A stretch of DNA of 63,424 nucleotides, filler included, from Klebsormidium nitens (GCA_000708835.1; 5 parts of 5 records of this genome joined end to end with filler, not necessarily neighbours in it), one strand, 5' to 3'. Shown: positions 31,292-41,704, counted from the first letter of the whole stretch. The notes: generated by a model not told the origin, from the letters alone. Numbers and translations: made by a program.

Positions 31292-31292
31292 C

Positions 31293-34200
31293 GAGCAGGC
31301 CGCCAGAACGTATGACTACGTGGTAGCTGCGCTCGTGACGGACGGCGCCCATCCGAGGCCGCTGAATTTCCCTCAAGGAGGCACGCTGGAGGCATCGGAG
31401 CAGGCGTATGCGGATGAATGCTTGTCTTCTATTCGAGGTAAGATTTCACGACGTGAGTCTACAACTAGTCGAGAACCTGAGAATCTGGTACCGTCCATTA
31501 ATGTGCCCACATCTTCGTACGGTCTGCCTTTGGGCGTACGAAAAAGCTCTGGTCAAGAACCCTGCAAGTATCGCGCTCGTGTAACAGTCAATGGCCGTCG
31601 TGTCGGATTAGGCGAATATTCGACACGTGCAGAAGCTGCTGCAGCACACGATTTCGTGGCACGTGCAGCTTCAAAACGTTCTAAGTTGAATTATCCTATA
31701 TCTACGACCCTCGAATTGAATGCTGAAGACAGGCAACGTTTAGAGCATATCGTTGCACAACTGATGCCGGCAGCTGAGCAGCCGACAGATGATGACGTCT
31801 CCCAGCTTTCCGACGAACTTGTGCGTGACTTTCGCTTAGCGAGTAACGAAGGCCCTATGTATGTCTGTACAAGTTCATGTCGGCGCACTTGGTTTTCGCA
31901 TTCAGTACGGGGAGTTACCGAAGCTTTGAGAGATCGACTTTCTGTGAGCGAAGCAAACTCGTGGCTGACTGGACGTCTTTCTGTTGGCGGGACTGAATGG
32001 GTATGTTCCACTTGTTACAAGTATTTGGCGAAACGAAGGTGCCCTCCGGGAGCGCCGCCTCGCCAGCCGGACTTTACAAAATTGGATCCGGCGTTGCAAG
32101 GATTGACAAGTATGGAGAATGACTTGATTGCTTTGCGTCTGGCATTTATGAAGATGCGTGGTTTGCCGCCTTCTGTGGCGGGTGGTCCAAGAAAACTGGG
32201 GCAGCTGTCGTTAAAAGGCATGGTTGTGAACGTACCTGCTGATTTAAGCAGAATACAAGTCGCGCTTCCTAGATTTATTGATTCGGAGGGCACTATTCCT
32301 GTTGCTATCAAGTACAAACTTCGAAATAAGGCTTGTTACCGGGCAGCAGAAAACGTGCGTCCGTCCAAATTGCGCGACGCGATAGCTTCTTTGACTATGC
32401 GCCAAACTCTGTGGAGTGAGGCGCATGTGACAGTGCGAGCTGATTGGCTTGCTTCTGCTGGTTCCTCTGATGATTCGAGTCTCCGATGTTCTTCGTTCGA
32501 TAATAATATGCTTGGATTAGAGGGCGGTCTGTTGCCCGACGGATTCGATGCTGCGACTTCATCGTCTGAATCTGATTCTGAATCTGACGATGACAATCAA
32601 TTACCTCCTGAAGAAACTATGTTGCTGGACGTGCCACCGTTTGTGGCTTCGCATGCTTACGGTGTTAGTGTGGCGCCCAGCGAAGGGCAAACTCCGATCG
32701 GAATGCTACAAGATCCGTTTGCGGAAGAGAAAGCCTTCCCGTGTTTATTCAATGGAAATATCAGACCCAGAAGCGAGCAGAGTTATAATAAGGTGTGCAA
32801 ATTTGAATTGACAAACGAAGATCGACGTTTTGCACGCTATCCGAGCAATATTTTCTTTAAACTTCGCAAATTACAAGCTGCAGCTGTGGCCAGTGAATCT
32901 TGGGTACGGTTACGGAAAAAGAAGCTGCCAAATCAAACGTTTCCTACTGCGGGAGAACTTCGAAATCCTAATACGAAGTCTTCTCTACTATCTCAAAATG
33001 TAGGATACCGTGACTTCAAAACTTTACGTGGAAGTCCGGAATACAATCGGCAAGGTAAAAAAGAAGCATTCGCTATGATCCGACAGCTAGGGCCTTTCCA
33101 GATATTCGCAACCTTTACTATGGCAGAGACGCATTGGGGTGCTCTGCTCCGTACCCTATATCAACTAGCAACCGGAGAACTTATATCTGAAGCTACTGCT
33201 GTTAATTTGCCTTGGATCGACAAAGTACGTTTAATAAGAGATGATCCGGTTACAGTTGCTCGTTGCTACTATAACCGCAGGGATCATTTGATCCGGGTAT
33301 TGCTGAAGTATTCATCTCTTATCGGACATATTACGGATTTCTTCTGGCGCGACGAATTTCAACAACGAGGTACGCCTCACACACATGCAGCCTTTTATCT
33401 AGCAGATGCACCGAAATTTGGTATCGACGACGATGACGCGGTTGTAAATTTCATCGACGAGCTTGTCACGTGCTCGTCTACAGCTGTTTCGTCGACTTTG
33501 TTGGCTGGTCAATATCATCATCACAGTCGGGGCTATTGTTTGAAGCGGCGTTCTCTCGACAACAAACGCGTGTGCCGATTTGACTTTCCTCGACCCCCCT
33601 TACATGAAACAATGATTCTGCATCCTCTGCCTGAAAGTCTGTCAGAATCTAGGAAACAAGAATGCGCAAGATATTCGCGACAGATTACGGAAGGCTTAAA
33701 ACATCTAGACTCTGGCAATTCTGATGCCGAACACTGGTCTTGTTCCGACTTCTATTCAAATCTGAGTCTGACACCAGTGGAATATGTACTTGGCTTGCGG
33801 TTCAAACTTGTGAAGCCAACCATCTTTCTTAAGCGACGACCGTGTGAAGTGTACATCAACAATTACAATCCGAAACTTCTAAGACTGCTGGAAGGAACCA
33901 ACATGGATATTCAGTTTGTTTTGGAAGCGTACGCCGCAGCAAATTATATTAGCTCATACATGATGAAGACGGACTACAGATTAAGCAAACTTTTAGACCA
34001 GGCGTACGCTGATGCTCGGCGGGGTAATATGGAATTGCGCCGAAGTATCAGACAGGTTGGCATGACACTATTAAAGGGGCAAGAGATCTCAGCGCAAGAA
34101 GCTGTGTACGGGTGTCTCGGATTGCCTTACAGACATAGTTCCCGGCAGCATGTTTTCATTCCAACAAGTCCACCTGAAAACCGGACGTTGTTGGTGAAAA

Positions 34201-37200
34201 CTGACACTGCGTTGTCTCTTCTTCCGGAAGACTCAACGGAGTGCGTTTATTCGAATATTATTGACAAATACGCGATGCGTTTACAAAATGAAAGCATGCA
34301 AGGGACGGAAAATCTGACGCTAGCGGATTTCGCTGCATGGTATGACCATGGAACGACTGCTGCAAGCGCCCAGGAGAACATAAACGAGGATAGTGTGGAG
34401 TCTGTTACAACCGCGGATCAGACCGTGGCTGTTGAATCCGCTGATACAAGCGATGTCCGTAGCTCTGTCAAGTATCACAGACGTGAAAAAGCGAAAATTA
34501 TACGGTACGTTGGGTTCAGGAAATCAGAAGATCCCGAATTATACTTTCGAGAACGTATTCTGCTATTTCTGCCATGGGTATTCGAAGGTCAGAGTCATCT
34601 CAGCTTAAGCGAAGTAGAAGATCAGATTTTGCTATCGCACTTCGATACTTTTGAAGCTCGATATATGGCTGAAGAAGAAGCAATAATTGCTGCTTCTGCG
34701 CCATACGATTTTCATTCAGATATAGTTTGGAAAGATGTTGAGAAATATGCAGAAACTCGGGCAAGCGAAGATGCAGAATTACTTGATGAACTTTCAGACG
34801 AACGATGCAGCCGCGAACTGAATCCTGAAGTCTCTAATTTAGCGGCGGAAGCTGCTGTCCCCGCAGAATTCACAGTGCCACCAGATTCTGCGTTCGCTGC
34901 AGCGTCGTCGAGCGAAGAGAAGTTGCCGCACTCTCAAATTCTATTAAGCGACGAAGAATTCTATCAGCAGATGCGAATGCTTACGTGTTCGCAACGTGCA
35001 TACGTCGACCACGTGATCCATTGCCTCAAATTTCCAGGTGATCGAAAACTTATCGAATTCCTTACGGGAGGCGCTGGCACAGGCAAAAGCCTGGTCATTC
35101 GCTGCATTACACAATTTATCATACGAACATTTAGCGGTGCCGTAGGCTTACAGCCAACGTCTTTGAAAGTGCTGTTAACTGCTTTCACCGGAAGCGCTGG
35201 CTTTAATATAGATGGAGTTACTATACATTCTGCTTTTCGAATTCCGCTGTATGCAAAGTTGGAGTCGTACATACCTGTGATGGGTGAGAAGCGAGCGGCC
35301 CTTAGAGACGTATACGCTGATTTGAAGGCTTGCGTAGTGGACGAAATTTCTATGACGGGTGCTAAACTTCTTCAAATCATTAACTACCGGTTACAAGAGA
35401 TCTTTGAGTCCGTCGAACCATTCGGCGGACTCCCAATGATTTTCGGTGGCGATTTGTTTCAGCTTAAGCCGTTATGGGACGGCTATGTTTTCGAAGGTAT
35501 ACGAAAAAATGGTGTGATAGTAAGCAACTTATGGGAAGAAAATGTTCGCATGTTTGAACTTACCCAGATTATGCGTCAGAAAGACTGTTTGGAGTTCGCT
35601 CAAGCATTAAACAGATTGCGTACGGGCAGCCATACCGGACAAGACTTGGACCTTTTCCGTACGAGAGTCGTGGATCCCCTCGACTTGCCAACAGACTATT
35701 CGGCTTTTGATAAACACATTTTTGCAACACGGAAGAAACGAGATGCGCATAATAGTTTAGTTCTTCGCTTGACCGGGGGACCTGAATGCACTGTCCGTGC
35801 TAGAGATGAAGCGCTATCATATGGCGTTTCCGCTAGAGATCGAACGCACTTTTTAGTGAAAGCTGAAAGCATGCACGATACTGAAACGGCCACTTTATTC
35901 ACAATCCTACAACTTAAAGTGGGTCTTTTAGTTGAAATAACCTGTAATGTAAACATCCCGGACGGCTTGTACAATGGAGCAATGGGATATGTAAGGCGCT
36001 TCCACGACTTGGGAGGGTCTGAGCCTCATATTATTTGGGTGGAATTCACGGAGCAGCGTATTGGTAGTCGGACTCGTGAAGATTCAGCTAACTTGTACCG
36101 TTTGTGCTCGTCTGTTGATCCCACATGGACGCCAGTATTTCGAATTTCTCGTACGTTTCAGGCCACGCAACGAATTGAAAGCACTATATTGAGAACACAG
36201 TTTCCCTTACGTCCAGCAACAGCCGGAACTTTCTACCACACACAGGGAATGACACTTCAGAAAGGTTCTCTTGATTTCAGAGGTGCTTCGAAGCACCACG
36301 TTGACGCCGGTCGGCATTATGTCGGCCTTAGTCGCTTTCCAAATCTAAACCAATTGTTCATTTTGGATCCCGCATTTGATGAGATAACGGTGAGTACGAA
36401 AGTGATAGCGGAAATGGCACGTTTACGTCAACAAGCTTCTGTTATTCCTTGTATCCCGCAGGTACCTATCAGCCCTGGAGTCGACAGAGAATTACATTTG
36501 ATTCTACATAACGTGCGTTCACTGCGGCTTCACAAATCTGACGTTTTCGCGGATAACAACTTCCACCGTAGCCATGTGCTTGTCTGTACAGAATCTCGGG
36601 CAGCACCATCTTGGCCATTATCGTCTCTCGAACAATCAGACTTTGACGTGTTTCGCGCTGAAAGGGATCCGTCTGCAAGAGACGGATTCGACAACGTTAT
36701 CGTATACGTCTCAAAATCCGGCCATACACTAAGCGCTACTCTTCATTCTGCTGTCAACGATTGTCGTTCGCAGGTGCTCTGCCTTCACATTCGCGGCCGC
36801 CCTTCGCCAGATTTTTACCTAATAAATGTATACAGATCGCCATCCGATTTTTTGGTTCATCGATTTTTAGAATCACTGCAGAAACTCATCGCACAAATCT
36901 TCGAAAGGACGCCACAAGCATCGCCATCTTTCCTTTGTGTAGGAGATTTTAACATAGACCTCTTAAAACCTTCCAGCGAAGCTAACAAACTCACTGATAT
37001 AATGCGTTCTTTCAATGCTCAGCTACTGAACTCCTTGCCAACCACCAACCAGGGCGCTTTGCTCGATCACGTTTGGGCGTCGTCTTCTTTAGCGAATGCA
37101 GGGACCGCAAGAAATTTGGAAGCATATTGGAGCGACCATAGCCCGGTGCATCTCGCATTCCACTGGAGAGCCGACGGAACCTGTGGTTCGCCAAGTTTCA

Positions 37201-37208
37201 AGGTATGA
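31293..37208 (+). CDS. Helentron/Helitron2-type transposase: AP2(partial)-AP2-Zn finger-HUH Rep-Pif1 helicase-APE/EEP endonuclease; 5-prime end lies in the gap
   Basis: Uninterrupted frame of >1960 codons. Rep motifs QIFATFTMAETHW, EFQQRGTPHTH (~33354-33386) and AANYISSYMMK (~33945). Pif1 motifs GGAGTGKS (~35067), VVDEISM, GGDLFQLKP, LTQIMRQKD. EEP motifs LHNVRSL, INVYRSPS, VGDFNID, LLDHVW, SDHSPV. AP2 at ~31524-31697, plus EQAARTYD..PLNFP at 31293-31370. Confidence 0.93.
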   Translation, partial: EQAARTYDYVVAALVTDGAHPRPLNFPQGGTLEASEQAYADECLSSIRGKISRRESTTSREPENLVPSINVPTSSYGLPLGVRKSSGQEPCKYRARVTVNGRRVGLGEYSTRAEAAAAHDFVARAASKRSKLNYPISTTLELNAEDRQRLEHIVAQLMPAAEQPTDDDVSQLSDELVRDFRLASNEGPMYVCTSSCRRTWFSHSVRGVTEALRDRLSVSEANSWLTGRLSVGGTEWVCSTCYKYLAKRRCPPGAPPRQPDFTKLDPALQGLTSMENDLIALRLAFMKMRGLPPSVAGGPRKLGQLSLKGMVVNVPADLSRIQVALPRFIDSEGTIPVAIKYKLRNKACYRAAENVRPSKLRDAIASLTMRQTLWSEAHVTVRADWLASAGSSDDSSLRCSSFDNNMLGLEGGLLPDGFDAATSSSESDSESDDDNQLPPEETMLLDVPPFVASHAYGVSVAPSEGQTPIGMLQDPFAEEKAFPCLFNGNIRPRSEQSYNKVCKFELTNEDRRFARYPSNIFFKLRKLQAAAVASESWVRLRKKKLPNQTFPTAGELRNPNTKSSLLSQNVGYRDFKTLRGSPEYNRQGKKEAFAMIRQLGPFQIFATFTMAETHWGALLRTLYQLATGELISEATAVNLPWIDKVRLIRDDPVTVARCYYNRRDHLIRVLLKYSSLIGHITDFFWRDEFQQRGTPHTHAAFYLADAPKFGIDDDDAVVNFIDELVTCSSTAVSSTLLAGQYHHHSRGYCLKRRSLDNKRVCRFDFPRPPLHETMILHPLPESLSESRKQECARYSRQITEGLKHLDSGNSDAEHWSCSDFYSNLSLTPVEYVLGLRFKLVKPTIFLKRRPCEVYINNYNPKLLRLLEGTNMDIQFVLEAYAAANYISSYMMKTDYRLSKLLDQAYADARRGNMELRRSIRQVGMTLLKGQEISAQEAVYGCLGLPYRHSSRQHVFIPTSPPENRTLLVKTDTALSLLPEDSTECVYSNIIDKYAMRLQNESMQGTENLTLADFAAWYDHGTTAASAQENINEDSVESVTTADQTVAVESADTSDVRSSVKYHRREKAKIIRYVGFRKSEDPELYFRERILLFLPWVFEGQSHLSLSEVEDQILLSHFDTFEARYMAEEEAIIAASAPYDFHSDIVWKDVEKYAETRASEDAELLDELSDERCSRELNPEVSNLAAEAAVPAEFTVPPDSAFAAASSSEEKLPHSQILLSDEEFYQQMRMLTCSQRAYVDHVIHCLKFPGDRKLIEFLTGGAGTGKSLVIRCITQFIIRTFSGAVGLQPTSLKVLLTAFTGSAGFNIDGVTIHSAFRIPLYAKLESYIPVMGEKRAALRDVYADLKACVVDEISMTGAKLLQIINYRLQEIFESVEPFGGLPMIFGGDLFQLKPLWDGYVFEGIRKNGVIVSNLWEENVRMFELTQIMRQKDCLEFAQALNRLRTGSHTGQDLDLFRTRVVDPLDLPTDYSAFDKHIFATRKKRDAHNSLVLRLTGGPECTVRARDEALSYGVSARDRTHFLVKAESMHDTETATLFTILQLKVGLLVEITCNVNIPDGLYNGAMGYVRRFHDLGGSEPHIIWVEFTEQRIGSRTREDSANLYRLCSSVDPTWTPVFRISRTFQATQRIESTILRTQFPLRPATAGTFYHTQGMTLQKGSLDFRGASKHHVDAGRHYVGLSRFPNLNQLFILDPAFDEITVSTKVIAEMARLRQQASVIPCIPQVPISPGVDRELHLILHNVRSLRLHKSDVFADNNFHRSHVLVCTESRAAPSWPLSSLEQSDFDVFRAERDPSARDGFDNVIVYVSKSGHTLSATLHSAVNDCRSQVLCLHIRGRPSPDFYLINVYRSPSDFLVHRFLESLQKLIAQIFERTPQASPSFLCVGDFNIDLLKPSSEANKLTDIMRSFNAQLLNSLPTTNQGALLDHVWASSSLANAGTARNLEAYWSDHSPVHLAFHWRADGTCGSPSFKV

Positions 37209-37748
37209 AACATATCTGAAGCACACCCTGTTGACGTAATAAAAGACGAGCTACACAACTAAGTAGAACCGTCAGACCCCCCGGGCGCCGACCGGGAGGG
37301 GGATCCCCCAATACAAATTCCACGGGAGGGGGATCCCCGGAGCGCGAGTCTGTCTCCCGAGAGCTCAACGTTGCCGTTCGGATTCAGTGTTCCACAGACA
37401 TAGTCTAGTTCACAGCTGATTACTTTCGAATCGAACTAACGACGAAGCCTTTGTGCTATTCTGCCGCTGTGACTGCCGCTTGAGAAGCAGATAATCTTCG
37501 TCGAACAACTTTATCAACTGGTAATGCTTCAGTCACCCTTCCTTTGTTTCTTTGAGGCTTCATGCACGTACGCGCGCTTCTGGCTAGGACACGTGACGCG
37601 TGACTCAGCGACAGTTGTCCCATGCAACCAACGCAAGTGTAGCGAAGACTTCTCTGTCGTTACCAGGCCTCCGCTGATTCTGCATGCATATTCTTCTTCC
37701 TAGCACGTTACGAAGACTTCGAAGATTTCTCAAACATGCACGAAAGCA

Positions 37749-38100
37749 TCAACGTGCGTCAGCTTCAATTTCTCGCACAATCAAGATTCCAAGGAATTCC
37801 CACACACTAACTGAACTATCAACGTGCGCCGACTTCAACTTCTCGCGCCGACTTTTCAGACTTCGCTTGACTCTCGCACAAACTCTTGACAGCTCAGCGT
37901 ACGCGACTTCGGATAAAGTTTTGTTCGACATGCACTTTCTATCCACTATTCCTTCTGGTTCGACTTCAGACATGCTTTCAATCTGTTTCAGTTTACTCGG
38001 ATTGACTTCTACGAAATCGCCCGTAAACATCTCCTTCAGTCGAAATCTAGCAGCTTCTGTTTGATGTTCTCCTTCCTCGAATTCCCATAGAACTACCACG
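37749..38100 (-). CDS. Possible small ORF or exon between RepHel and the RPA-like gene, function unknown
   Basis: Open frame with a protein-like charged composition (EFEEGEHQTEAARFRLKEMFTGDFVEVNPSKLKQIE...). No recognisable motif. Confidence 0.3.
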
Positions 38101-38155
38101 AGAAAGAAACACGAAAGCAAAGAATTCGAAGGGGCGCCAGTTGCAACCAGCAGCA

Positions 38156-41094
38156 ATGGCGCCCAAGGCCTTCGAAATACCGACCGTTACGATCAAGCAG
38201 ATAGAAGACTTCCCCGTAGATACAAGCCTGTTCCAAGTGCACGGCAAAGTAGTCGAACTAGACAGTCCTACTGACAACAACAAGCCTAACGTCCGCGATC
38301 TTCCATTTGGCCACATGTGCGCAATGCAAGTCGTCCTGCAAGATAAGGAAGGGGCTAGAATCACGGTGGAAGCCACAAGCAAGAACAAGCAGTTCGTGCA
38401 ATCCGTGAGCGACAGGTGCTGCAAGGACAACACGATCCTTCTTCATCGACCAGTGGTGACGTCATGCAGGTAAATTCTGGATGTACTGAAACATTGGAAG
38501 CCTTTGGTGTTACATTCTATAGGCTTGTTACAACTAAGACTACTGTTCACGAATATTCTCTTTCTATGTATTTTGACGTTGTGTGCCAGGCTGGTTGCGG
38601 TCAATACTTCTGTCACTGAGAGTCCCACTTGCACATACTGCAAGCTTCTCGGTAGTTCTCGTACAAGAAGGCGCTCTCCGAGTTTTTGTCTGAGCAAAGA
38701 ACGCTGCATGCTGTATGGCTTGCAAGTCTAGGAACCGCATGCACGACTGTAACACATCCAGCTAATAGTGTGGTTTACGAACGGTGCTTCTCGTGATCCA
38801 GGTATTCTCTTACGGACAAGCCAACCTCCCTGAAAGTGCAAGAAGGTCGAACTCTCATCCAGGACTCCGAGGAACACATCGATCAAATCCAAGAACCAGC
38901 CGTCGGTTTCGATGCTTTACAGCCAGGCGGGGTAAGTTGATCGCTGTATGAAATTTCAATTTGTCAGATACAATCAGACTACACTCTGAAGAGCATATGC
39001 ATGTTCTGATGTATATTCAGTTTGTTATTGCAGAGCTTGGCTGCTTCGATGCAGATACCTTAAAGCAAGAAAGCACATCTGACTGCCCATGTCTGTCATG
39101 CAACCAAGCGTACTTTGACTTTTACAAAGTGCAAGCTGATGAGCGTGTCTTCGCGACGAGCTGCTGCCGTTTCCGATGATTGCTGTACTACGTACAGGTA
39201 CGGACTATGTAAACGTCAGCATAAATTTGTGATATCTCATTTCCATCGGTCAATTTACAGGTACATAAGATCGAGGGCCTGCTTATCTACAAAAGCCGTG
39301 TGTCAACGCCAGCTACAGCAAGGGGCGATCGCGATGTCCGTAAAATCATCATCAAAGACAGGCAGGGCATCATGGGCAGCATCGCCATCTGGGGCAGCAT
39401 GGCGCACATCCCGGAGATAAAGGACCTGAAGGTTCGTGATGACGTCATCGTCGTCGGTGGCGTCCAGTACGACATGGACCAGGGCTGCAGCAGCACAACT
39501 TGGAAGTAAGTTGTGCATGCATTCAGGACACAGATTTTCGTCAACTTTTCATGATATCAATAAGCGACGTTGACTAAACATGTGACAAGAGGATTCCCGC
39601 TGCTTTTCGTATTGCCGTTTGAAAGATCTTTCATTTGTGAAGGAAAAACAACCAATGTTGCATCAAGAAATTGCATCGCTATCTCTGAAAGTAGGTTCGC
39701 GGCTTTTCAACGCTACTGTTTGCAATTTCGACTGCTCGCTTTATGTTTCAAAATCTCAAATAAACGTTGCAGCACTGCACGCGCATGCACGCGCGATCTT
39801 AAGGCCTTCGAACGCGCGCGCGCGCTCGCCAGAATTTGAGAAAAATAGGCGCGCGCACAGTGCGTTCTGAATTGCGTAAACACGTTTTTACAGGAACGAC
39901 TCAAAAGTCATTTGCACGCACCAGTTGTTTAACTGTTTGTTCATCCTCTGGTGTTACGGACTTCTTAGTCATGAGTATTCCATCCGTTAAACTAATACCG
40001 AATTTCCTGACTAACCCAAGACGTATTCTGATCATTCCTGTCACAGCAGAAAGTTGTAAAACTTGATTTCGTTTGTCTGCAGCACTACTATCACAGTGAC
40101 CGGCCAGGCGGCAGCTGCAATAGCTGGAATCGGGCTCACCTACCGAGTGTCGACCGTCGACAAAATCGTACCCTGGCCTCGAGTCGTACAATCGCTGGCA
40201 GGCAACAAGTGGACAACAACGACAGTGCTCGGAAGCTTCATCCAGTTCACCAAGATCGACGCCATCGGATACGGCTGCAACGACTGCAGCAGCACAGCCA
40301 GCCGTAACCCGGTGACAAAGGAGCTCTTCTGCGACCAAGGCTGCAAGCCGGGGCCGCTTCGGGACGCCTGCGTGGAAGTGACGGTCACAGCGGACATCCG
40401 CATAGACGGCGGACGTGAGTATTTTAACTCTCATTTTCGCAATTGCAGACGAATAAGGCCGACACTATTGCGCTGAACGCATCGCTCTATTTAGCTTCAT
40501 AGTCCTCTGCCTTGTTCTGATCCGTTCAATTTCGTCTGCGCTAATTCTATTCCGTTACATGCGATTCGTTCCGTTCTATGCATTCCGTTCATTCCATTCC
40601 GTTATTTACCTTCGAGCGTCGTAATCGAATAGGATGCGCTGACTTTATCTGGACTTGCTCTACGCATACCAACTCTACGCCTCTTAACGAAACATCGACT
40701 TCTTCTTGCCGAGACAATTTCTAAGCCTGCTCCGGATCTTCAGTTTCCACGACGCTGATTCTACGTAACGCATCTTATACGATCTCATTCTGTCTGCGAT
40801 ATCCGCGCAGTGATATACACTACGACTTCTTTTGCAGCGGACTCGATTTCCGTAAAGATCTGGCCTAATGAGTTCCCTGTCGTCACCGGTACGCACCTGG
40901 AGAGTTTCTGCACCAAGCCGCCCAACGAGCAACTGGACAACCTCAACATCCGGCTCAAGAATCGGAATTTCGCCATGCATATGCGGATTCGTGAGAATCC
41001 TAACACGCAGTTCAGCCAGTACCAGGCAAATCTCGTCGGTCTAGATCTCCCACCAAATTTCGGGTTCTTCAACAAAAAATATAAGGCGGAGTAA
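38156..41094 (+). CDS. RPA70-like multi-OB-fold ssDNA-binding protein with a C4 zinc finger, 434 aa, 5 exons
   Basis: Exons 38156-38469, 38802-38931, 39261-39505, 40083-40414, 40811-41094 total 1305 nt with compatible phases. OB-like segments VHGKVVEL..VVLQDKEGARITV and VRKIIIKDRQGIMGSIAIWG. Zinc finger GYGCNDC..LFCDQGC. Confidence 0.72.
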
Positions 41095-41704
41095 AACGGG
41101 ACTGACTATCCTAGAAACGTGCGAGTGACTAGCAGAAATAAACGTGGTCGCTTGAAGGAACAACGACATTCCGTATGGTCGAGAAACTTAGAGTACGCTT
41201 TCAGTCAACAAGGACGTGGAACGGATAGTCCTAGTCTGAAGTCGCGGGAATTGTAAAAAGTAGAAACGACTATAGAGCAAAAACACTTCGTTCCAGAATC
41301 TCGTACCTGTAAGATCTGCGATGTACATTCTCAAATCCGCTGCGGCGACTGTAAATTGATGTACTTGCCACAACCAGAAACATGACATTTCCATTCGCAT
41401 GCTATCAGTCGGCAGTATGCGCGTTCAACGTGACCGTCGAAGCAGACTCTCAAGACACACATGAGTGACAAAATAAGCGATTTCATCTTGACAATGACAA
41501 CAGTAGATGTACAGTGACTTCTGCATACATGAGAAAGCGAGCCAAACTTATAACCATGTCAAGTCTGACAATGTAAGTTGTGTGAGCTGTTGCAAGCAAC
41601 GCGCATACGGCATCGACCATGGCGTTCTACGCGCGCTGCGCGCGCAATTCAGTACATCTCACATTAATTCCCTGACAGAGGCAAGCCAGTACCGTCGCGC
41701 AGAC

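Follow-up and report, generated by a model that had tools for sequence, protein, structure and literature searches.

The DNA analysed here, hereafter the window, is a stretch of 63,424 nucleotides (nt), filler included, from Klebsormidium nitens (GCA_000708835.1), in which five parts of the assembly are joined end to end. One piece of it, spanning 31292–41704, is dominated by a single intronless open reading frame (ORF) on the plus strand at 31293–37208, which comprises 1971 codons and a stop codon and is open at its 5′ end, where it meets an assembly gap; the next-longest ORF of the piece encodes 177 amino acids (aa). Judged from its sequence, the product of the long ORF is the Rep-helicase-endonuclease (Rep-Hel-EN) protein of a Helentron, a rolling-circle DNA transposon, and in the same frame its N-terminus carries a tandem of AP2/ERF-type domains, the first of which is cut by the gap. 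Window coordinates below are all on the plus strand.

Results

Pfam recognised DUF6570, Helitron_like_N, PIF1 and Exo_endo_phos_2 in one frame of the ORF. The HUH nuclease (Rep) domain occupies 32799–33968 (Helitron_like_N, aa 503–698, E = 2e-19), and both its HUH motif HTHAA (33378–33392, aa 696–700) and its two-tyrosine motif YISSYMMK (33945–33968; YISSY, aa 885–889) are intact. It is followed by a PIF1-like helicase core at 34980–35627 (PIF1, aa 1230–1445, E = 4e-27) with intact Walker A (GGAGTGKS, 35067–35090) and Walker B (VVDEISM, 35334–35354) motifs, and by a C-terminal AP-type (EEP) endonuclease at 36615–37148 (Exo_endo_phos_2, aa 1842–1952, E = 1.5e-10), whose motifs GDFN (36942–36953) and SDH (37131–37139) are in frame in the window. 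Upstream of Rep lies DUF6570 (PF20209; 32070–32405, aa 260–371), scoring 24.4 bits against a cutoff of 24.3; this domain is found in nearly all Rep relatives and is the usual region preceding Rep in Helitron-like proteins. It is preceded in turn by a Cys4 zinc-finger-like motif (CTSSC ... CSTC, 31866–32015) with cysteines that are invariant among relatives, the first pair being spaced CTSSC in the window, whereas P0123 and P0125, two nearer relatives, have C-x-x-C.

The Rep region, used as the query of a word-based search, returned 671 relatives. Among the best 120 of these, all but the three nearest are Helentron proteins with a Rep domain 37–43% identical to that of the window; their named sources are cnidarian, echinoderm, mollusc and hemichordate, and many carry OTU, PF04843 or EEP domains. 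The assignment to Helentrons follows from the Pfam domains, the intact catalytic motifs and these 671 Rep relatives, many of them with EN or OTU. Unlike the HNH-AP2 homing endonucleases, the 1971-aa protein has no HNH domain that Pfam could find, and it also differs from cellular AP2/ERF factors in that its AP2 domains share one ORF with Rep, helicase and endonuclease.

A first-pass annotation of this DNA had quoted AP2 peptides from 31293–31697, and we located them there, in the frame that starts at 31293. The complete domain, AP2b, spans 31524–31697 (aa 78–135) and was recovered by phmmer, profile comparison, alignment, AlphaFold2 and Foldseek. All the signature columns of the AP2 family (GV, aromatic-x-A-x-I/V, LG-x-F/Y, AA-x-A-Y/H-D and LNF/YP) are present in it; G81, V82, Y93, A95, L106, G107, A115, A116, D120, N133 and P135 are the conserved columns in the alignments, and the strands carry the basic residues R83, K84, K92, R94, R96, R102 and R103. 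Ahead of AP2b, a linker at 31374–31523 (aa 28–77) contains an E..A..CL core in which E36, A40, C43 and L44 are invariant in six sequences. The ORF opens with the C-terminal half of a second domain, AP2a (helix and LNFP end; 31293–31373, aa 1–27), which matches column for column the complete AP2a domains of the relatives P0121, P0123 and P0125, while its N-terminal half falls in the assembly gap. Both the full AP2 domain in frame with Rep-Hel-EN and the half domain at the gap edge, as proposed in the annotation, are thereby borne out.

When the AP2 stretch was scanned alone against Pfam, no AP2 match was obtained, only a sub-threshold match to dsrm, and a word-based protein search with aa 1–260 of the window protein gave no matches. 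More sensitive comparisons point consistently to AP2. A phmmer search of aa 1–136 against all PDB sequences yielded four matches, all of them AP2/ERF (best, AtERF1, E = 0.037), and language-model features place aa 1–140 nearest to AP2 clusters, in which diatoms are the commonest recorded taxon. Searched with phmmer against 1.84 billion representative proteins, aa 1–140 gave 238 matches at E ≤ 1e-3, including 19 at E ≤ 1e-10; E values reach 1e-21 overall and 4e-19 for proteins with 2–9 Pfam AP2 domains. Seven of the top ten matches are Pfam-certified multi-AP2 proteins (2–9 domains, 61–250 bits) and the other three are Helentron N-termini, and 30 of the 45 aligned homologous domains reach Pfam AP2 at E ≤ 0.01. 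A profile built from 12 Helentron-borne AP2 domains, including the AP2a copies of P0121, P0123 and P0125, retrieved from PDB solely WRI1 (6e-12), ERF096, ERF1 and TEM1 (2e-6).

The structural prediction agrees with these searches. AlphaFold2, supplied with the 45-sequence alignment, modelled AP2b as three strands (11–13, 22–28 and 31–38) and a helix (41–55) with a mean predicted local distance difference test (pLDDT) score of 80, matching the antiparallel sheet packed on a C-terminal helix that is typical of AP2. The nine best PDB matches of this model in Foldseek are all AP2/ERF (template modelling (TM) score 0.6–0.79, probability 0.98–1.0), whereas the next ones fall below a probability of 0.2; against 1gcc the TM score is 0.74/0.79 and the root mean square deviation 2.1. 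By homology and by predicted fold, the window domains are true AP2 homologues.

Read-derived DNA contigs from three runs of one sample, the probable source of the assembly, are colinear with the window over the whole ORF (31293–37208), and one of them reaches 1412 nt upstream of 31293. The AP2 region is joined to RepHel in the contigs of all three runs, and the missing N-terminal half of AP2a exists in the source reads. The window ORF had no exact match in the contig collection. The reads and the window differ within the ORF at 31871, inside the first Cys pair, where a 3-nt length variant occurs in the contig of one run and is missing from those of the other two, and at the TTT run at 36375–36377, which is TT in the contigs of all three runs. 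One T fewer at 36375 would introduce a stop after aa 1697 and put the endonuclease out of frame. As the reading frame of the window at this position is the one conserved in P0002, the version in the reads appears to have been inactivated recently; alternatively, assembly and reads disagree. We also observed a 3409-nt read-derived contig at lower depth (~17) that matches the window only at 33897–33926 and 36216–36240, two short conserved motif regions, with 2310 other letters between; this pattern points to a second Helentron family, a diverged one, in that genome.

AP2, the zinc-finger-like motif and DUF6570 occur together in one ORF in four relatives, P0001, P0003, P0123 and P0125, and in the first three the ORF reaches Rep. 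P0001, encoded on contig L001 with a Rep 54% identical to that of the window, is a single 1271-aa ORF with the order barrel (described below), AP2a, AP2b, Cys4, DUF6570 and Rep. The same order is found in one ORF in P0123 (827 aa) and, up to the start of DUF6570, in P0125 (488 aa). P0003, whose Rep is 41% identical, has one N-terminal AP2 domain, which Pfam scores at 20.4 bits (E = 6.5e-4), then Cys4, DUF6570, Rep and PIF1. In L003 both AP2 domains lie in an upstream ORF with a frame break before Rep-Hel-EN, and its product P0002 begins after the AP2 region. The relatives come from Logan contigs (SRR23617307 and SRR23617210), ENA ERZ26273096 and JGI 3300060285, at least three other samples in all. 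Since such one-ORF arrangements recur in four relatives drawn from three or more further samples, the AP2-Rep fusion, on the contigs compared, is real and conserved and not an accident of assembly.

The fusion appears confined to few Helentrons, the nearest relatives by Rep. A seed hidden Markov model (HMM) of the Helentron AP2 domains, run against the best 120 of the 671 Rep relatives, matched only the window, P0001 and P0003, and AP2 was found in none of the 117 more distant of these 120. A word-based search with aa 60–420 of P0123 returned only P0123 and P0125, and a metagenome scan with the AP2a-linker-AP2b alignment returned two loci, both short and uninformative.

Between L001 and L003 the ratio of nonsynonymous to synonymous divergence (dN/dS) is ~0.34 for AP2a, ~0.30 for AP2b and 0.58 for the spacer, values that are rough owing to saturated synonymous divergence (dS ~1.5). 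On these estimates the AP2-Rep architecture is kept under purifying selection. In a tree of Rep sequences, the window groups with P0001 and P0002 in a fully supported clade (100%). A tree of the AP2 domains themselves (68 domains, 61 columns), a check proposed in the first-pass annotation, could be built; it is poorly resolved, and neither which way AP2 was transferred nor how often it was acquired can be read from it.

A conserved module of ~60 aa opens the relatives (L001:178–400, L006:726–940, L007:500–730 and L008). It has no Pfam match, but AlphaFold predicts it with a pLDDT of ~90 over aa 1–70, and Foldseek matches the model to Tudor, PWWP and Agenet barrels of the ‘Royal family’ (probability ~1.0, E ~1e-2, TM score up to 0.7 on the target). 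At 80% aa identity between L001 and L003, the barrel is conserved better than the rest of the N-terminus, and it precedes AP2a in most AP2-bearing relatives; that of the window, Tudor/PWWP-like by the same token, probably lies in the gap upstream of 31293. Among the proteins from the phmmer scan, the host-like P0194 (1828 aa) has a Pfam Tudor domain at aa 700–744 followed directly by five AP2 domains, which is the domain order of the Helentron N-terminus. A comparison of the Helentron barrel with the Tudor domain of P0194 showed no detectable sequence link (hhalign probability 0.6%).

Downstream of the transposase, a further ORF at 38141–38473 begins ~930 nt past the stop codon, and an ORF at the same relative position in L001 (7590–7790) shares 49% identity with it (E = 2e-18). 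By its language-model features it lies closest to the OB_Ssb-like, POT1 and RPA clusters (score 0.92); searched as a single ORF, it has no Pfam or PDB sequence match. It is likely an OB-fold (RPA/Ssb-like) accessory gene for single-stranded-DNA binding, or the first exon of one, and with a probable RPA-like gene at this position the element would extend past 38.5 kb. Another ORF at 40063–40476 had been taken by eye for an RPA70 zinc ribbon (C-x2-C ... C-x3-C), a candidate that was dropped when Pfam and PDB sequence searches gave it no support.

In the flanking DNA, two exact copies of the 16-nt sequence CGGGAGGGGGATCCCC lie 30 nt apart at 37293–37308 and 37323–37338, 85–130 nt past the stop codon, and each contains the 10-nt palindrome GGGGATCCCC. 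Two such matches occurred in 0 of 100 shuffles, and the repeats at 37293–37338 are a candidate cis element. Helentron ends are characterised by short asymmetric terminal inverted repeats, 3′ palindromes and insertion between T residues; as a sign of such an end the palindrome-bearing repeats are only suggestive. The relatives share no flanking DNA with the window element. No sequence was conserved in both end regions, and 11-mers shared among the non-coding 5′ and 3′ regions of the relatives and the window occur at chance level, bar one block in L001 and L003. This block, an 87-nt GC-rich non-coding segment (L001:1–88 and L003:183–269) some 90–180 nt before the start codon, is 87% identical, an identity that persists though the coding regions of L001 and L003 have saturated synonymous divergence. 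No counterpart turned up in the remaining loci or in the piece of the window; the block is a candidate cis-acting 5′ sequence.

Discussion

AP2 domains bind double-stranded DNA via their sheet, and the AP2-fold domains of lambda integrase (arm-binding) and of HNH homing endonucleases place a catalytic domain on specific DNA. The window protein resembles the HNH-AP2 homing endonucleases and lambda-type integrases in having an AP2-fold domain on the DNA-cutting or DNA-joining enzyme of a mobile element. It differs from them in that the partner is an HUH nuclease with a helicase and an AP endonuclease, and not an HNH nuclease or a tyrosine recombinase, in that the element is a eukaryotic DNA transposon, and in that the AP2 domains are in tandem. 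Background on AP2 in mobile elements is reportedly to be found in Magnani 2004, Wessler 2005 and Balaji 2005.

With the Helentrons (HLE2) of marine invertebrates, fish and oomycetes the window element shares a zinc-finger-like motif, DUF6570, a two-tyrosine HUH Rep, PIF1 and a C-terminal AP endonuclease in one protein, a Rep 37–43% identical to cnidarian, echinoderm and mollusc proteins, and an RPA-like accessory gene, which in the window likely lies downstream. Those elements, however, carry OTU (PF02338), PF04843 or an Ulp1-type protease and no AP2, whereas the window clade has two N-terminal AP2 domains and, in the relatives, a Tudor-like barrel. A 2024 survey of Helitron-like elements names only RPA, OTU and EN as recurrent extras, and AP2 goes unmentioned in a 2021 study on the evolution of Helitron variants. 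We found no description of AP2 in Helitron or Helentron transposases in the literature searched, in which subscription papers and Repbase reports were thinly covered, so that a prior report is possible. This literature and our survey of the best 120 Rep relatives accord with the first-pass view, which did not count AP2 among the standard domains of Helitrons.

Compared with Helraiser and canonical Helitrons, the window protein likewise has an N-terminal nucleic-acid-binding region before Rep, of which Cys4 is kept; the corresponding zinc-finger-like region of Helraiser is reportedly thought to help recognise transposon DNA. The difference is that the window protein adds an unrelated module upstream, a pair of double-stranded-DNA-binding AP2 domains. 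The multi-AP2 nuclear proteins of diatom-like algae and alveolates (ApiAP2-type) and the plant AP2/ERF factors belong to the same domain family and fold, but they have no transposase, and the window domain, unlike theirs, scores below the Pfam threshold. Compared by eye with AtERF1, AP2b seems to lack some of the DNA-contacting residues, for example having Gly in place of the second Trp of ERF1.

The reading that we favour, with moderate confidence, is that an autonomous Helentron gained an N-terminal tandem AP2 module that guides its transposase by binding double-stranded DNA sequence-specifically. In this model, the AP2/ERF-type module, which precedes the ancestral Cys4 motif and DUF6570, would most likely have come by a single acquisition from, or by exchange with, the abundant multi-AP2 transcription factors of the host lineage. 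The basic three-stranded sheets of AP2a and AP2b would bind a specific, probably bipartite, double-stranded DNA motif, and the bound pair would tether the rolling-circle transposase to the chosen DNA. The most likely target would be subterminal sequences of the element itself, where binding would direct Rep to nick the correct ends, by analogy with lambda integrase, whose arm-binding domain has the AP2 fold, and with HNH homing endonucleases, whose AP2 domains likewise position the catalytic domain. Alternatively, the module may direct integration to particular genomic sites, for which the first-pass annotation suggested GC-box promoters, and the Tudor/PWWP-like barrel may add recognition of chromatin or nucleic acid.

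The choice of DNA could also be divided differently, with AP2 sending insertions to promoter-like or repeat motifs of the host and the zinc-finger-like motif and Rep recognising the ends, as in other Helitron-like elements. We regard this as rather unlikely, yet deserving of serious attention: Cys4 and DUF6570, common to all relatives, are retained, so the ends may not need AP2; a Tudor/PWWP-like barrel, of a kind typical of chromatin readers, stands before AP2 in the relatives; and no conserved AP2-type motif was seen near the ORF ends across them. What counts against it is that the window offers a single readable copy with unread termini, and hence no insertion sites. It is improbable that AP2 is a captured fragment of a host gene, in frame by accident and with no role in transposition. 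Its position, order and linker motif are constant across families with Rep domains only 41–55% identical, its dN/dS is ~0.3, and it invariably stands at the N-terminus in the reading frame of Rep, as also in P0001, P0003 and P0123, even though Helitron-like elements recurrently carry host-derived sequence, multi-AP2 proteins resembling the query are abundant in the host lineage and a host-like protein with Tudor and AP2 exists (P0194).

The ORF might instead be a host AP2 factor that co-opted a Rep-helicase and is no longer mobile, as the single copy in the piece and a single-copy-like read depth of ~40–55 in every bin (a weak measure) would allow. This we hold to be very improbable, given the diverged and broken paralogues found within single samples (L001, L003 and L008 from one run), the second diverged family in the same genome (the 3409-nt contig), the retention of all Rep, helicase and EN catalytic motifs, the RPA-like accessory ORF downstream, as in mobile Helitron-like elements, and the frameshift in the read-derived version. 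Misassembly of a host AP2 gene onto a Helentron is suggested by nothing beyond the adjoining assembly gap and is effectively refuted by the read-derived contigs, which cross 31293–37208 unbroken and extend 1412 nt further upstream, and by the same one-ORF fusion in four contigs from other samples.

Several observations weigh against a guiding AP2 module gained once by an active Helentron. The AP2 domain of the window lies below the Pfam PF00847 gathering threshold (12.5 bits, E = 0.19, cutoff 33.3); of the Pfam search that the first-pass annotation envisaged, the threshold was thus missed while the homology stood, by way of phmmer and the Helentron-only profile. The 3′ end of the element was not found and its 5′ end lies within the gap, and the 16-nt repeat is absent from the related loci. 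The frameshift before EN in the read-derived contigs means that the copy may be inactive, and the hint of transcription is faint and unconfirmed: a single contig (263 nt, depth 2, two mismatches) covers 32207–32468, taking in part of DUF6570, and it comes from a run whose RNA nature is a guess. To the saturation of dS noted above is added a Rep tree in which the branch that sets apart the four AP2-bearing rows has a support of only 50%; given this support and the separate position of the P0003 AP2 domain in the poorly resolved domain tree, two acquisitions of AP2 are possible on the sequences compared.

A bolder extension, which we put forward as a long shot, is that AP2-bearing Helentrons moved AP2 domains between eukaryotic lineages and seeded host families of multi-AP2 factors by domestication, and that barrel and AP2 together would provide chromatin-guided, sequence-specific integration, a mode of targeting that to our knowledge has not been described for Helitron-like elements.

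For annotation, an ORF of this kind can pass for a host AP2 factor, and the Pfam threshold misses these AP2 copies. A eukaryotic DNA transposon now joins the short list of AP2-carrying mobile elements, next to HNH homing endonucleases and integrases, an addition relevant to the long-standing idea that mobile DNA gave rise to, or spread, AP2 transcription factors. How Helitron-like transposases find their ends and targets is poorly understood, and Helentrons have scarcely been studied experimentally. The AP2 module suggests how these Helentrons might choose the DNA they bind, and a well-understood, readily assayed pair of double-stranded-DNA-binding domains on the transposase offers a direct experimental handle on that choice.

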